Shown here: positions 31,996-38,905 of the stretch, piece by piece
Layout of the letters: each line of letters opens with the position of its first letter
Numbering within the stretch: the first letter of the stretch is position 1
Origin: Dimorphilus gyrociliatus
Taxonomy: Eukaryota; Animalia; Annelida
Length of the DNA stretch: 64,000 bases
Direction of reading: 5' to 3'
Assembly (NCBI GenBank): GCA_904063045.1
Contig: CAJFCJ010000031.1
Coordinates: 1 to 64,000, forward strand
Translations under genes and position numbers: made by a program
The notes under the pieces: model-generated
Seen by the model: the letters and a program-made list of their open reading frames with translations, nothing else
Database searches by the model: none
Told to the model about the DNA's origin: nothing

Positions 31996-33473
31996 GTCTC
32001 TTCCCTTTCTGTCTAGTTACTAATTTTTTTTTCAAGGTAAACATAACGTCAGAGAAAAATTTCCTTCTGTAAAATTATAATTACTGACGCTGCAAAAAAA
32101 AATTGTATAGTATATAGATCTATTTTTAAAATTGTCGCAGTAATATTACCCAAAACTGAAAATAGCTTGTAATTATGGACAAACTGTCATAAAAAATTTC
32201 GCACTCATTCAGCGAGTAATTAAGGGTAAAAAGAAAAAACAAAATATGAACAGAGTGTTTCCCATCTTTCATTCGTTTCTTTTTTTTTTCTTTTTAATTT
32301 ACTGGATGGCTTACCCAAAACCCTTTGATTATTGTAAATAAATATACAGTATATATAATTATAAACTACTGCCAACTTTTAATTCCTCCATTCAAGTGAT
32401 TGGTGAGTAGGCAGAAAAATATCCTATCATAGGAAGGTTGTAATTCAACGTTTAACCTAAAGATGGCGTATAAAACGGGTAATTTTAGACGCCTATTTCT
32501 TTGAAAGATTTCAGATTCACCTGCAAAAAAAAAAACACACAGAAATTGAGAAAAAAAATTAATATTTTTAGAATATGAATTCCAAAATTCCAATTTGATG
32601 AAAACTTAATAGGAGCAATTATTCCTTTGTTTAAATGACTAGAAATATATTCTGTGCATGTATAGGTTTATTTAAGCATTAAATGCGAATTTGTTAAGAA
32701 AGAATGATTATTCTAAAAGAAGAAGAAAGAGAAACATAAATAGAAGATTATCTTTTCGTACTCAATGGAAAAAGGAATGACTTTTCTCTTTATATATTTA
32801 GTTATAATTAATTGAAAGAGGTGTTAAGAAAGAATAGGAATAGTATTAGTTTTAGTAACTTAATGATAAAAACATATAAATCTTGTAGCTGTTAAAAAAA
32901 GAATCAGAAGAAGAGGAGGAACACTGCAGAGAAGAGAAAGAATGAGGTGAAAAACTTAGATGAATAGTGTTTATTATCAACTATATACATGTATATGTAT
33001 ACATTAGTATATAATTGCAAAGCTTCTCTTCCTTTATATAGTTAAGAACAAATATATCATAGAGAAAAGACATTTTTTCCCTTTATTTCGGTCTAATAGA
33101 TTACGCCATGCTGCTGTTTTTTATATAAAATTTATATATACTGTATATAATAATTAATGGTATTAATACTTTCTTTTTGAAAAGAACCTAAGAAAGTTTC
33201 CATAGATAAATTTAGTATCATTGATAAAGTAAGCGAGAAAAATCTCTTGATATTTTTGTTTTTATTTCAATATGAAAGGAGAATCTCTTTTAGTTACGTC
33301 ACTGATAACGGGGTTACAAAAAATTAAAATCATATCCGGTTGATTATTTTTCTTTTCCAATCGATAAGTATTAAATCGATGTGAACAATTAAGTGTCTAA
33401 TCGATATTAATTGTTGTTGAGTAGATATCAAGATTTTTTTTGACTGTTGGGCCACGTCATTTCAGTTGGAAAA

Positions 33474-34186
33474 ATGTCACCGAACGCTCCAAGTATACGC
33501 CAACCGAATATCGATGAAGGTTTTGACAATCATCATCTCGATTTGTGGTTTTGGTCCGAATATCAAAAGAAATTTGATAAAGTTTCACTCGATGAATTGC
33601 ACGAAAGAAAAATTGGTCTTGAGAACAATTTTAAGAACAATTTTTTCTTTTGTCGCCCAATGTACGATGCCATTCGACAGGAAATAAGGTAAATATTTTT
33701 TGTTCGACCTCTTTAATTGTTTTTTATCTTTTTTTATGGAAAAAAATTATGTTTTTATAAAAAGATAGTTGTAAACTTTTTATCTCTTTCTTTCTGTCTA
33801 TCTATCTGCCTATCTTCTCATTCTAACACACCCCTACACAGCTTAACAGAAGGTCTCTCGCTGAAACTGTACGAAAGAATGCAAAGATATATTAAGTCGT
33901 CTTCCGAACTTCACGAAGAGCTTAAACGGCAATTAGTTCATTGCCACGACGCATTCGAACAGGCTGTAGGATATTTATTTTTGGCTAAATGTGAAAAAGT
34001 TATTTACGAACTTTTTTGGTTTGTTACTCGTCAACGAATATCTCCAACAGTCCAGGTAAGTGAGCAAGGGAGGAGAAGGGGGAAAAGATCCATCATTAAT
34101 TGAATTGTTTAATTCTATTAAAATTAATTTATTTCTCCTTTTAGAACTTGTACGATGCTATGCTGAAAACAGGACTTTATCATTAG
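33474..34186 (+). CDS. Unknown 156-aa protein, 3 exons; essentially a stand-alone copy of the domain at the C-terminus of the neighbouring gene
   Basis: Exons 33474-33688, 33842-34055 and 34145-34186 have canonical splice sites and compatible phases (2, 0). It aligns with the C-terminus of the gene at 35484-38905. Confidence 0.8.
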
Positions 34187-34874
34187 CCGTTACTAGTACA
34201 TATACCACATATATACAGTATATTATAATCGTTTTTTCTCTATATTTTTTATCTTAACGGTTATCATTTGTTAAAGGAGACCGGTTTGTAAAAAAATATG
34301 TTATTGTTCTTCTTCTTTTTGATATATTGCAGCTAGAATAATTTCTAGGGAGAATGGAACATTTATGATTCTTTTTTTTTTAAACCTTGAAATTATATAG
34401 TTAAATTAACACATGCAATAATCATAATGAACAAAGACTACAAGAAAAATAAAAGTATAGAGTTCACTAATTATGTTTCTTTTTTTTAATATTAATCATT
34501 ATTAGTCTAACGGATTTAGTCTTGCTTTACACGCTGTCTTGTTCGCCATTTTGTTTCACTATTCTCAATTTACTCTCTTAGTATACCATATACAGTATAT
34601 ATCATATACGTTTTACAAATATTGTAACAAAGATATCTGCTCTATCGCGTAAATAAATAAATAGAAACAAATCACTTCTCATTTCTAAAGGTTTCAAATG
34701 AAATGTAAACTTTCACACTCGATTATCTTTCAAAATTATATATAAAATTATATATAATTGACCTATCATCTAAGTTCACGTAGTAATTTTAACCTATCTA
34801 TATCTTCGATGTAGCTCTTGCACTTAATCTTATGTTGTTCATTTGAAAATTACTCTTTCTCTCTCTCTCTATAA

Positions 34875-34908
<34 letters not shown>

Positions 34909-35483
34909 CTCATTAATTTTATTTTCTTCAGAGTTTGTCTTCCTCCCTGCTCCTCTAGCCACCCGCGAGGCAACTAATGCCCGTGTAGGCTTTTGTCTAT
35001 TTAGTTAATAAAGACATTCCTTCCTTTTCTCCTACTTAAAAATCTTCCAAGTGAGAGGAGACTTCACTGTTCGTCTTCTGAGTAATTATTAACTACGGTA
35101 TCGTATAGCAGTCCTAATTTTCCCTTAAAATGCATTATTAGTCCATTATTTATTTTAATAACGCTCGAAAACTGACACCCAGTCTTGTAGTGTTTAAACG
35201 AACGGTGTTAATCGAAAACTGATATTGATACCTTGGAAAGGTTAAAGGTGTGCTTTTTCCTAGTGTCGTTAAGATAGTGAGTGATATAATAGATATTCCA
35301 CGACTTTAGTTACCACAAAATACGAAGCGTTTATATTTTTTTCCCAATATTGATGATAATCATCAGCAAAGTACAACAACGATGATAGCACCAACGTATA
35401 ATCTTAACAAATAGAAATAATAGAGAACAAAAAAAACCAAACAAAAAATAACAAAGGAAAAAGAAAACGGAAGAAGATAGAAA

Positions 35484-38400
35484 TCATAACTTGTCTAAGG
35501 ATCCTTTCTCGTCTAAAAGAGATGCTATCTTGCAGAAGGCCTATAAAGAATGAAATATAGTTATAGAGATAAATATTTGAGTAAGGGGAAAAAAATTTTT
35601 TTTTATACTTACTCTATCAATCGCTGCGCTCTTCGCGATTATAATATCCTCCAAAAAGTTACACACATTATTTTCAAATTTAGAATGAAAGAGTTTATAG
35701 ATACCCGAATCAAGTATATTATCACATGCACTAATTTCTTCCAAAAGACTTTTCCTTACATTTTCAGCATCTCTCAATGAACTTTGAGCACTCATAAGAA
35801 TTTCGGCTGTTAACTTGTCGTTCTGCTCACAAATACTAAATAAACGCTCGAAACAATCATGATCTGTAAAATATTTTTTCAATAATTCCTTTTCTAAAGA
35901 GATTTTACGACTTTTTATTTGCTCTAAAGACATTCCCTTCATAGTTGCAAACGTTTCCCAGAATATTAAATCCAACTCATAGTCTTGTCTAACTCTCTTG
36001 TTAATTTCTTTCGCTCTTATTGAATCTTTACCAATTAATTTACGTTTGATTTCGTTGAAAGTTTTATTTCTTTTTGGTTTGGCGCAACAAATTGCTCTCC
36101 AAGGTTCTAATTTCATCTCCTTTAGTTCATTGAAATTGCCATTCATTAAACACTTTTGTTCATGTTGTATAGCTCGCATATATTCCATTTCAACAACGAA
36201 CCACGGATCATCATCTGAATTGGATTCAATAGAGTTTAACTGGTCATATAAACTTTCTTCTCTATATTCGCCAATCTCCATCTCGTCTTCTGAGTCGTTT
36301 GCGTCTGTTACATCTGCAATATCATTATCACTATAATCGTCATTACTATTATCGTTACTATCTTCATCAGTAATCTCCTGGTCGCCAAATTCATTGTTAG
36401 TGTTATTAGCATTGACATGATTGTCGTCGTCATCATCATCATCGTCATTATCGTCGTCGTTATCTTTATCGTCGTCGTCGTCGTCATCATTGTCATCTTT
36501 ATCATTTTCATCATCATCTTTGTCACCGTCACCGTCGTCATTGCCATTTGTATCACCTTGCTGGCTAACATCATTATTATTGTGAAATTCGTTTTGGTCC
36601 TCAGCGAAATCATCGTCACTTTCACTTTCCGAAAAGGACATACTTTGTTCCAAATTGTCTTCATAAGTCAAGAAGGGCTTCTCCAGCTTGTTCTGCCTTT
36701 CTCTTAATCCATAAAATGGTTGTTCTTGCTCCAATTTTAGATTTCTTTGTCGTTCCTCTTCCTCTAACTCTCTTAAACGTCGTCTCTTTAATCTTTGTCT
36801 TCTTTTCTCTGCTTTTTCTCTGTTGATCCGTTCACGCCTCAGCATATATTCAGTAAAAGAACTATTTTGCAGGGTATCTCCTGTAGCTACTTCTGAAAAT
36901 GATACAGGTTCTTCTAACGTTGGTAAATCGAGTGGGCTTTGGATTGTTGTTATGGGTATAGAGTTCATTATGTTAGGAAAGACTATTGAATCTCCAACAT
37001 AAATACTATTGACTGGTTGCGCAACAGATGCCATTGGCTCAAGCCCTCTGACATTCGTAGGCATTTGAGTATTCTGTTCAAGATCCTCTGCAGTATTTTG
37101 GTGAGTCTCTATCACGAAATTTTCCTCGCTGCTCATTTCGTCTGTAGTAGTTTCGATATGGCTTTCAATATCTTCTCCTTCGCATGACAACAAAGTTTTA
37201 TTAGTATCATCGTAAACAGTCGACGACGTTTCATAGTAATATATTGAATCTGGTTGCCAGCTGGCTGCTGATTCTAAATCAAGATTGAAATAATATCATC
37301 GTTAGCTTCTCATTTAACAAAAAATATATAATATAGGTTGTTACCTTGATAGTTATCGTTCAAGCTAGCATAAGGTTCATAATAGTAGCTCTGATCGTAT
37401 TGGGTATAATAATTATCAAGATGAGTTTCTTCAAAGTAGTTGGGATTCTCATTTATTTGCATTTCAGTATTCCAGGTTGCTTGACGAACGTCTTGCTGTT
37501 GTTGTGCGTGCCAAAAATTATAGTTGAAAGACGACGTTGGAATACTATTATATTCGGCATTGAATGTGTTCGCGAACATTAGATCGTTGGAATAGCCAGT
37601 TGCTGAAGCGGGTAATTGTGAAATTTCGAAGAGGGACGAATCAAGTATTGTTTGATCATAATCGATGCGTTGGACGTCTACATCTACAAAACTACTCCAT
37701 GGTTTATCGTTGTCTATGATAATATTTTTATCTTGTTCTGGGTTATTCGTAGGTGGTAGATTATTGATATTTGAGACGTTTGAAGCATTGGCAAAACGGC
37801 AGGATTCTAAAAACGTCTTATTGCTGTCGTTCATACTAGCCTGAGGCAAGATATTTTGATATTCTAAGCTTGATTCAAGCATGTCTTGATTATTGTCCAC
37901 TTCTTGGACATCAATATCGGCAAAAGCACTCCAAGGATCTTCTTCCCCAGGCAAGTTATACGTTAAATTTAAATTGTTCGTCAGATTAGGATTCCAATTC
38001 TCGCCATAGGTCTGTAGAGAGTAGTTGGTAAAAGTATTTTCAAGGCGATGTGTTTCAACGACTATTGAATCTTCAATCGAACAAGCCGCACTCCCGATAT
38101 AAGACGTTGAAGAAAGTTCATTTCCTTGGTGTTCTATAGTGAATGCGTTTGTTGAAACCCAAGCATTTCCATCCGGCGTTTCATCGAAGCTTTCAATAAC
38201 ATTCGTTAAATTAACCTGTGAGACAGTATCGCTATACTCATAAGATTGTGTCTCGTGATACTCTGGCCCGTAACGGTCAAAAGAATCTTGATTGTAGATA
38301 CTATAATCTACATTTATCAGACCAAAATATGATCCGTTGTTGCTGCTACTTGATTGCGTTTGTTGGAAGGTGTTCTGATAATATCGGTCAAATGTGCTAT

Positions 38401-38905
38401 ATTGATTAGGGTCGCTTTCCGGATTTATATCGTCAAAAATGTTGGAATTATCTTGATTATTAAGTGGGTGAGCCTCTTGGTTAAAACTGTTTAGATGTTC
38501 AAGGGAAATTTCGGGGAAAGGTGGTTCATAGCGATCTTCGTCCGTGAGAACATTCGGGAAGGGAACGTTTAACGGTCTGGGTGATATGGAGCCTTGACAT
38601 TCTTCAGCCGAATTGGAAGAACTACAATATTCATTCCCACCCGAGTTAATATGCCTTTCAATTTGTATTTGGTCTTTATAATTCTTTATATTGCTGCTTT
38701 CTTGACTATTTGGGATTAGTGCACGTGGGTTTTCGCCACCACGTGTAGAATTAACCATACTATCAAACATATTTTTATATTCACATTCACATAGTGATGA
38801 TGAATTTAAGCCATTATTCGCTTCTTCAATTGTATTTATCTCACCGACATTATGATTTTTTTGAGTCTGTAAAGACTCGCCTAACGGATTCGAGGAGTTC
38901 GGCAT
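35484..38905 (-). CDS. Unknown ~1092-aa acidic/N-rich disordered protein with C-terminal helical domain, 3 coding exons
   Basis: ORFs 37310-38920 and 35541-37193 join in frame through intron 37344-37274. The last exon is 35540-35484 (AFCKIASLLDEKGSLDKL*), after a GAT AGA|GTAAGT donor at 35613. An extra upstream exon cannot be excluded. Confidence 0.8.
36400..36600 (-). repeat. Coding Asp/Asn-rich (GAY/AAY) low-complexity tract
   Basis: Encodes DGDGDKDDDENDKDDNDDDDDDDKDNDDDNDDDDDDDDN. This explains the overlapping shadow ORFs. Confidence 0.85.

Follow-up and report, generated by a model that had tools for sequence, protein, structure and literature searches.

MicroProteins and similar domain-only dominant-negative paralogs are known from pairs such as the Id proteins and bHLH factors or LITTLE ZIPPER and HD-ZIPIII. 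These pairs, along with the taxonomically restricted gene families of animals and, with regard to fold, the RGS box (PF00615) and RGS-like domains, are compared here with two neighbouring genes of the annelid Dimorphilus gyrociliatus, a tiny marine worm. The genes, DgyrCDS14177 (the small gene) and DgyrCDS14178 (the large gene), lie on contig CAJFCJ010000031.1 of assembly GCA_904063045.1. The window, i.e., the whole 64-kb stretch that was analysed, is A+T-rich eukaryotic DNA with 31% G+C. Both genes are annotated and unnamed, and a literature search by the two locus names returned no paper. Judged by their sequences, they are true paralogs lying tail-to-tail. They probably represent a lineage-restricted (orphan) pair that arose by an old inverted duplication and shares an all-alpha domain of about 150 residues.

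The pair resembles microProtein systems in that a protein of 156 amino acids (aa), essentially a single domain, is paralogous to a domain of a much larger protein and appears to derive from a partial duplication. The small copy is also the more abundant one at the RNA level, as measured by crude depth. Its sequence describes a small single-domain homologue lacking the rest of the large protein, which is the structure expected of a microProtein-type regulator. Unlike the described microProteins, the pair is known here from genes and transcripts, and the large protein carries no recognisable effector domain to poison. With taxonomically restricted families the pair shares a low-complexity, disordered composition and the lack of a homologue outside one species in Pfam, the PDB and about 15 billion clustered proteins; by this absence from the searched databases it would count as such a family. 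It differs from them in its divergence to about 20% identity, its introns and its maintained frame, which together speak for age and constraint and against a recent de novo open reading frame. The genes are of a familiar kind, in which a taxonomically restricted gene is accompanied by a domain-only paralog derived from its partial duplication, and the domain itself appears to be undescribed.

When the small protein was compared by BLASTP with the last large exon, one significant alignment resulted, covering small residues 7-126 (E 3.5e-6, 32.7 bits). The Smith-Waterman score of the small against the large protein was 91, as compared with 30.3±4.9 and 31.7±5.5 for shuffled sequences (maximum 62, z about 12). 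Because none of the 4000 composition-preserving shuffles (2000 of each partner) attained the real score, the similarity is not a composition effect. An earlier reading of the same DNA made from the letters alone (the sequence-only reading) had aligned the two proteins by hand, claimed a shared domain with around 21 identities and proposed shuffling as the test of pairwise significance. Recomputing that alignment yielded 21 identities and 50 positives over 121 columns, and the claim is borne out by both BLASTP and the shuffles. Overall identity between the two domain copies is about 17-20%. Common to both are the motifs LDLxFW, SL[DE][EQ][LI]..RKI.LE and LF..K.E and an invariant Cys; conservation is strongest at hydrophobic or motif residues, which are distributed over the whole domain. 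The homology spans small residues 6-143, confidently at least 6-126. Since it begins at residue 6 (SIR), the small protein consists of little more than the domain. No third copy of the domain was detected by tblastn of both domains over the whole window.

The two gene models agree with the annotation. The translated exons of the small gene on the + strand give 156 aa, letter for letter the NCBI protein DgyrCDS14177, and the assembled coding sequence (CDS) of the large gene on the - strand translates to 1092 aa identical to DgyrCDS14178. The genes are convergent neighbours with 1297 nucleotides (nt) from stop to stop, close to the 1.3 kb estimated earlier. Two public transcript runs contain the locus, X2 (organism A) and X1 (a coral metatranscriptome). 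Both genes are expressed and correctly spliced: X2 contigs carry four junctions with GT..AG (33688/33842, 34055/34145, 35613/35540 and 37345/37273), including the three that the sequence-only reading had named for an RNA check, and a 491-nt X1 contig independently shows both small-gene junctions. The 3' untranslated region (UTR) of the small transcript reaches at least 34388, and that of the large gene was traced to about 35327. The transcripts of the pair do not overlap, because the segment of about 34516-35259 is free of transcript coverage. By the crude measure of contig word depth in X2, the small gene stands at 484 versus about 27 for the large gene (about 18-fold), which suggests that the small mRNA is much more abundant than the large one in this run.

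The intron positions provide a further comparison. Intron 2 of the small gene follows codon 143 and the last intron of the large gene follows codon 1074; both are in phase 0, and each is placed exactly 37 codons past the aligned Cys (C106 in the small protein and C1037 in the large one). The phase-2 intron in small-gene codon 72 has no large-gene counterpart. By the arithmetic of this analysis, one specified intron would share codon and phase within a domain of ~130 codons with a chance of roughly 1/390. As the small gene has two introns, the chance of coincidence rises to about 0.5%, a value valid only if the last 20 residues are gapless. These residues, between the LF..K.E motif and the phase-0 intron, are barely similar between the paralogs. 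Of the earlier claim of an identically placed intron, the common phase and the distance of 37 codons from the Cys were retained; exact equivalence requires the gapless alignment. An ancestral phase-0 intron common to both paralogs is likely, as judged from these positions.

The frame of the small gene is maintained. With this base composition, a frame would stay open over 156 codons by chance with a probability of 3.6e-6. Between the X1 contig and the assembly, the small CDS shows three differences (D18, L24 and V114), all of them synonymous third-position transitions; the probability of three out of three being synonymous under neutrality is about 0.01-0.04. The intact frame together with the synonymous-only differences indicates a maintained coding gene and not a decaying fragment. 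For the low-complexity N-terminal half of the large gene, two differences were seen at a contig depth of only 2.9, both nonsynonymous (K393R and W403C), which fits weak constraint on this half of the protein.

Searches for relatives of the domain returned nothing beyond the pair. Pfam-A hmmscan at E<=10 found 0 families for both proteins, for large residues 900-1092 and for the exon translations. The two-sequence domain profile matched no chain among PDB sequences at E<=10; single-sequence PDB searches produced chance-level hits only (a leucine-rich repeat protein at E 0.019 over 50 aa and gamma-SNAP at E 0.45). When the profile was searched exhaustively with HMMER against 1.84 billion cluster representatives, the two queries were the sole proteins recovered, and word-indexed searches of 5.8 billion proteins gave self matches only for the small protein, for the N-terminal 700 aa of the large protein and for the profile at E<=10. 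Accordingly, no homologue of the first 700 residues of the large protein is detectable in that collection. Back-translated motifs produced 146 pattern matches in JGI metagenomes, with 0 confirmed. By sequence, the domain belongs to no described family among the libraries searched, and the earlier description of it as unrecognised holds in Pfam, PDB sequences, the 1.84 billion representatives and the JGI metagenomes. The profile search beyond this genome that had been suggested along with that description found only the two proteins themselves; its further idea of an undescribed two-component family was overstated, the family, so far as can be told from public data, having exactly two members, both of a single species.

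The shared domain is predicted to be an all-alpha module of about 150 residues. AlphaFold2 gave helices only in both copies, with a predicted local distance difference test (pLDDT) of 40 for the small protein from a single sequence and 53 for the large C-terminus from a two-row alignment. Foldseek, proposed earlier for the predicted structures, was run with these poor models against the PDB and AFDB clusters and gave no match at E<=0.001; template modelling (TM) scores were all below 0.4 and no RGS was among the top results, which with models of this quality still allows an RGS fold. For the small protein, the ESM Atlas model (predicted TM score 0.49) has generic helical bundles as its only neighbours.

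By size and helical content the domain is similar to the RGS box, with an (E/D)(N/L)(L/D)xFW resemblance, a C-terminal amphipathic helix and one language-model lead. To the eye, LDLxFW...RKI.LE and [FL][DE]...[IL]F...F presumably recall RGS helices alpha4/5 and alpha7, a likeness which is taken as a lead only. It nevertheless seems improbable that the domain is a highly diverged known helical domain (an RGS-like box, from the ENLxFW helix, or, weaker, a GGA-type GAT domain) and that the large protein is the rapidly evolving orthologue of some known protein. Language-model neighbours of the isolated large C-terminal fragment were RGS-family clusters in 78 of 100 cases (best 0.85, 145 of 256 features shared), but those of the small protein were RNase III families, and the same large region read in its full-length context gave nothing of note (best 0.54). 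Both leads were rejected as mutually inconsistent and as scoring within the range that shuffled proteins often reach in the Atlas. The Pfam RGS and RGS-like models (PF00615 and PF09128) gave nothing at E<=10 with either protein, and the failure of the two-sequence profile to match a PDB chain also counts against this reading. Ahead of the FW motif (LDLWFW) the small protein has only 21 residues, too few to accommodate helices alpha1-3 of the nine-helix RGS box, and its motifs are spaced about 20 residues further apart than those of RGS boxes. GGA1 GAT chains appeared in phmmer of the large C-terminus against the PDB at E 0.1-0.14, but there was no GAT match from the small protein, the two-sequence profile or Pfam. 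Furthermore, the genome paper portrays D. gyrociliatus as a species of conservative evolution (PMC7854359), in which one would expect to recognise a conserved protein. A known protein changed past recognition thereby becomes less likely, although an orphan pair is not made remarkable.

The origin proposed for the pair is an old inverted duplication, at the DNA level, of the 3' portion of a gene, which would have yielded two convergent genes. Such an event would account for the tail-to-tail layout, the domain-only product and, probably, the shared terminal intron, and the inverted duplication suggested earlier agrees with the finding of true paralogs placed tail-to-tail. The reverse route may also have been taken, with duplication of a small ancestral gene and later extension of one of the copies. 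The identity of about 20% points to either an old duplication or fast evolution of the genes.

Several points weigh against this reading of an old orphan pair with a common intron and an all-alpha domain. MAFFT and global alignments with several gap penalties pair small codon 143 with large 1077-1080 and not with 1074; the intron equivalence thus moves by 3-6 residues in optimal global (Needleman-Wunsch-type) alignments and depends on the alignment chosen. Purifying selection on the small gene is read from three polymorphisms only, and the comparison of depths from the assembler word depth of one run. The models are of low confidence, and the domain may be a helical bundle or a coiled coil. 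That the databases lack relatives could be due to sparse sampling of dinophilid annelids and not to true restriction, other dinophilid genomes being outside the search.

As to function, the best-supported view is that both proteins bear the same helical interaction-type module, which in the large protein sits at the far end of a long, disordered and acidic tether and which the small protein provides free and in excess. One tentative proposal, made by analogy, is that the domain is a helical interaction or oligomerisation module and that the abundant domain-only paralog hetero-oligomerises with the large protein or competes for its partner. The earlier idea of a scaffold plus a small partner or dominant-negative is consistent with the layout. 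Its narrower version is doubtful: here the domain would be a new, lineage-born helical oligomerisation domain and the highly expressed small paralog a microProtein titrating or capping a long acidic, probably nuclear, scaffold. About as likely as hetero-oligomerisation or competition is that the two paralogs are functionally unconnected, the small protein having a role of its own (e.g., as an abundant structural or adaptor protein) and the adjacency being a scar of the duplication. At about 17-20% identity the interaction surfaces could have diverged completely; the transcript depths are about 18-fold apart, and the 3' ends, roughly 800 nt from each other with no covered overlap, give no sign of antisense coupling. 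Against a lack of connection, hydrophobic and motif positions are conserved along the domain as expected for a retained fold and possibly a retained oligomerisation mode. Finally, it is very improbable that the small gene is a transcribed, functionless remnant of a partial duplication. Partial duplicates often decay, and the small gene has no homologues outside this genome; however, its frame has stayed intact despite about 80% amino-acid divergence in a genome of 69% A+T, both of its introns are spliced correctly and one is unique to the small copy, its transcript depth is high, and all three polymorphisms are synonymous.

If the small protein modulates the large one, the pair would be a compact animal case in which a partial inverted duplication gave rise to a regulator of the gene from which it was copied, together with a new helical interaction domain. 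Were the microProtein reading true, a single inverted partial duplication would have made an animal scaffold and its antagonist at once. For now, the pair is a further orphan gene family in a genome otherwise known for evolving conservatively. It helps to annotate DgyrCDS14177 and DgyrCDS14178 and opens no long-standing question; the pair is fairly ordinary, though real.

Outside the domain, the large protein is compositionally biased over about 900 residues, which are probably disordered on that basis; a disordered extension of about this length had been described earlier. Residues 1-600 are N/S/Q/Y/E-rich and net acidic, and are followed by the short, strongly basic stretch RRERINREKAEKRRQRLKRRRLRELEEEERQR, which is assumed here to be similar to a nuclear localisation signal and is putative as such. 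A D/N-rich acidic tract of about 170 aa occupies residues of about 700-870, and the helical domain lies at about 924-1092. Within the N-terminal part are two repeats of ~55 aa with the joint core [DK]PWS.F.D[IV]DVQ..D..Q..L.SSL; their local alignment scores 99, as compared with 27.9±5.2 for shuffles, 0 of 2000 of which reached this score. Their W..F.D pattern is presumably reminiscent of WxxF-acidic adaptor-ear-binding motifs. The difference W403C, found in repeat copy 2 in an independent metatranscriptome contig, speaks against strict constraint. The coordinates of all features are collected in Table 1.

Table 1. Features of the small gene (DgyrCDS14177) and the large gene (DgyrCDS14178), in positions of the window
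Feature	Positions	Strand	Description	Evidence
Small gene exon 1	33474..33688	+	codons 1-71 plus 2 nt; LDLWFW and SLDEL..RKIGLE motifs	translation, NCBI identity, transcript contigs
Small gene intron 1	33689..33841	+	153 nt, GT..AG, phase 2	joint 33686/33840 (cut +2), contigs of runs X1 and X2
Small gene exon 2	33842..34055	+	through codon 143; shared Cys106, LF..K.E motif	translation, transcript contigs
Small gene intron 2	34056..34144	+	89 nt, GT..AG, phase 0, 37 codons past Cys106	joint in X1 and X2 contigs
Small gene exon 3	34145..34186	+	13 codons plus stop	translation, transcript contigs
Large gene exon 1	37345..38905	-	residues 1-520; N/S/Q/Y-rich, net acidic, two ~55-aa repeats	CDS = NCBI protein; contig 10 of X2; composition
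Large gene intron 1	37274..37344	-	71 nt, GT..AG, phase 1	joint 37273/37345 in X2 contig
Large gene exon 2	35613..37273	-	residues 521-1074; basic R/K/E stretch, then long D/N-rich acidic tract, then shared domain	
Large gene intron 2	35541..35612	-	72 nt, GT..AG, phase 0, 37 codons past Cys1037	joint 35539/35612 (cut +1), X2 contig
Large gene exon 3	35484..35540	-	18 codons plus stop	transcript contig, CDS assembly
Shared helical domain, large protein	35613..36065	-	residues about 924-1074, homologous to small 6-143	BLASTP, Smith-Waterman with shuffles, alignments, tblastn
Repeat copy 1	37820..37981	-	residues 309-362	core DPWSAFADIDVQ..D..Q.ML.SSL
Repeat copy 2	37586..37750	-	residues 386-440	core KPWSSFVDVDVQ..D..Q.IL.SSL

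The upstream neighbour of the small gene on the + strand is a protein tyrosine phosphatase (PF00102) of 559 aa, with no link to the pair. Ahead of the small-gene ATG, an acceptor-like tttcag occurs 8 nt upstream (33460-33473), and the sole contig reaching this end begins at 33471. An in-frame stop at 33441-33443 excludes unspliced coding sequence upstream of the ATG. Spliced-leader trans-splicing was considered as the source of the tttcag and rejected, as the genome paper reports neither spliced leaders nor trans-splicing in this species (PMC7854359). Between the 3' ends of the two genes, the untranscribed gap holds a (TC)n/(TA)n microsatellite at 34860-34910.

Some minor features of the transcript data were also recorded. 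One X2 contig skips 56 nt (35649-35704, - strand) with GT..AG within the domain exon of the large gene; its depth is 10.3 versus about 26 for the unspliced form, and its short side measures 28 nt. If real, this would be a minor isoform with a frameshift after ...NILDSG, in which the last helices of the shared domain are lost. The GAT/GAC-rich stretch 36376-36561, which encodes the poly-Asp/Asn tract, draws many unrelated contigs (summed depth 1603 in X2 and 61 in X1), and the depth there is therefore uninformative on expression. The coral run X1 contains a contig of correctly spliced small-gene mRNA (window 33471-34203) about 99.4% identical to the assembly, which indicates that Dimorphilus or a very close relative was present in that coral sample.

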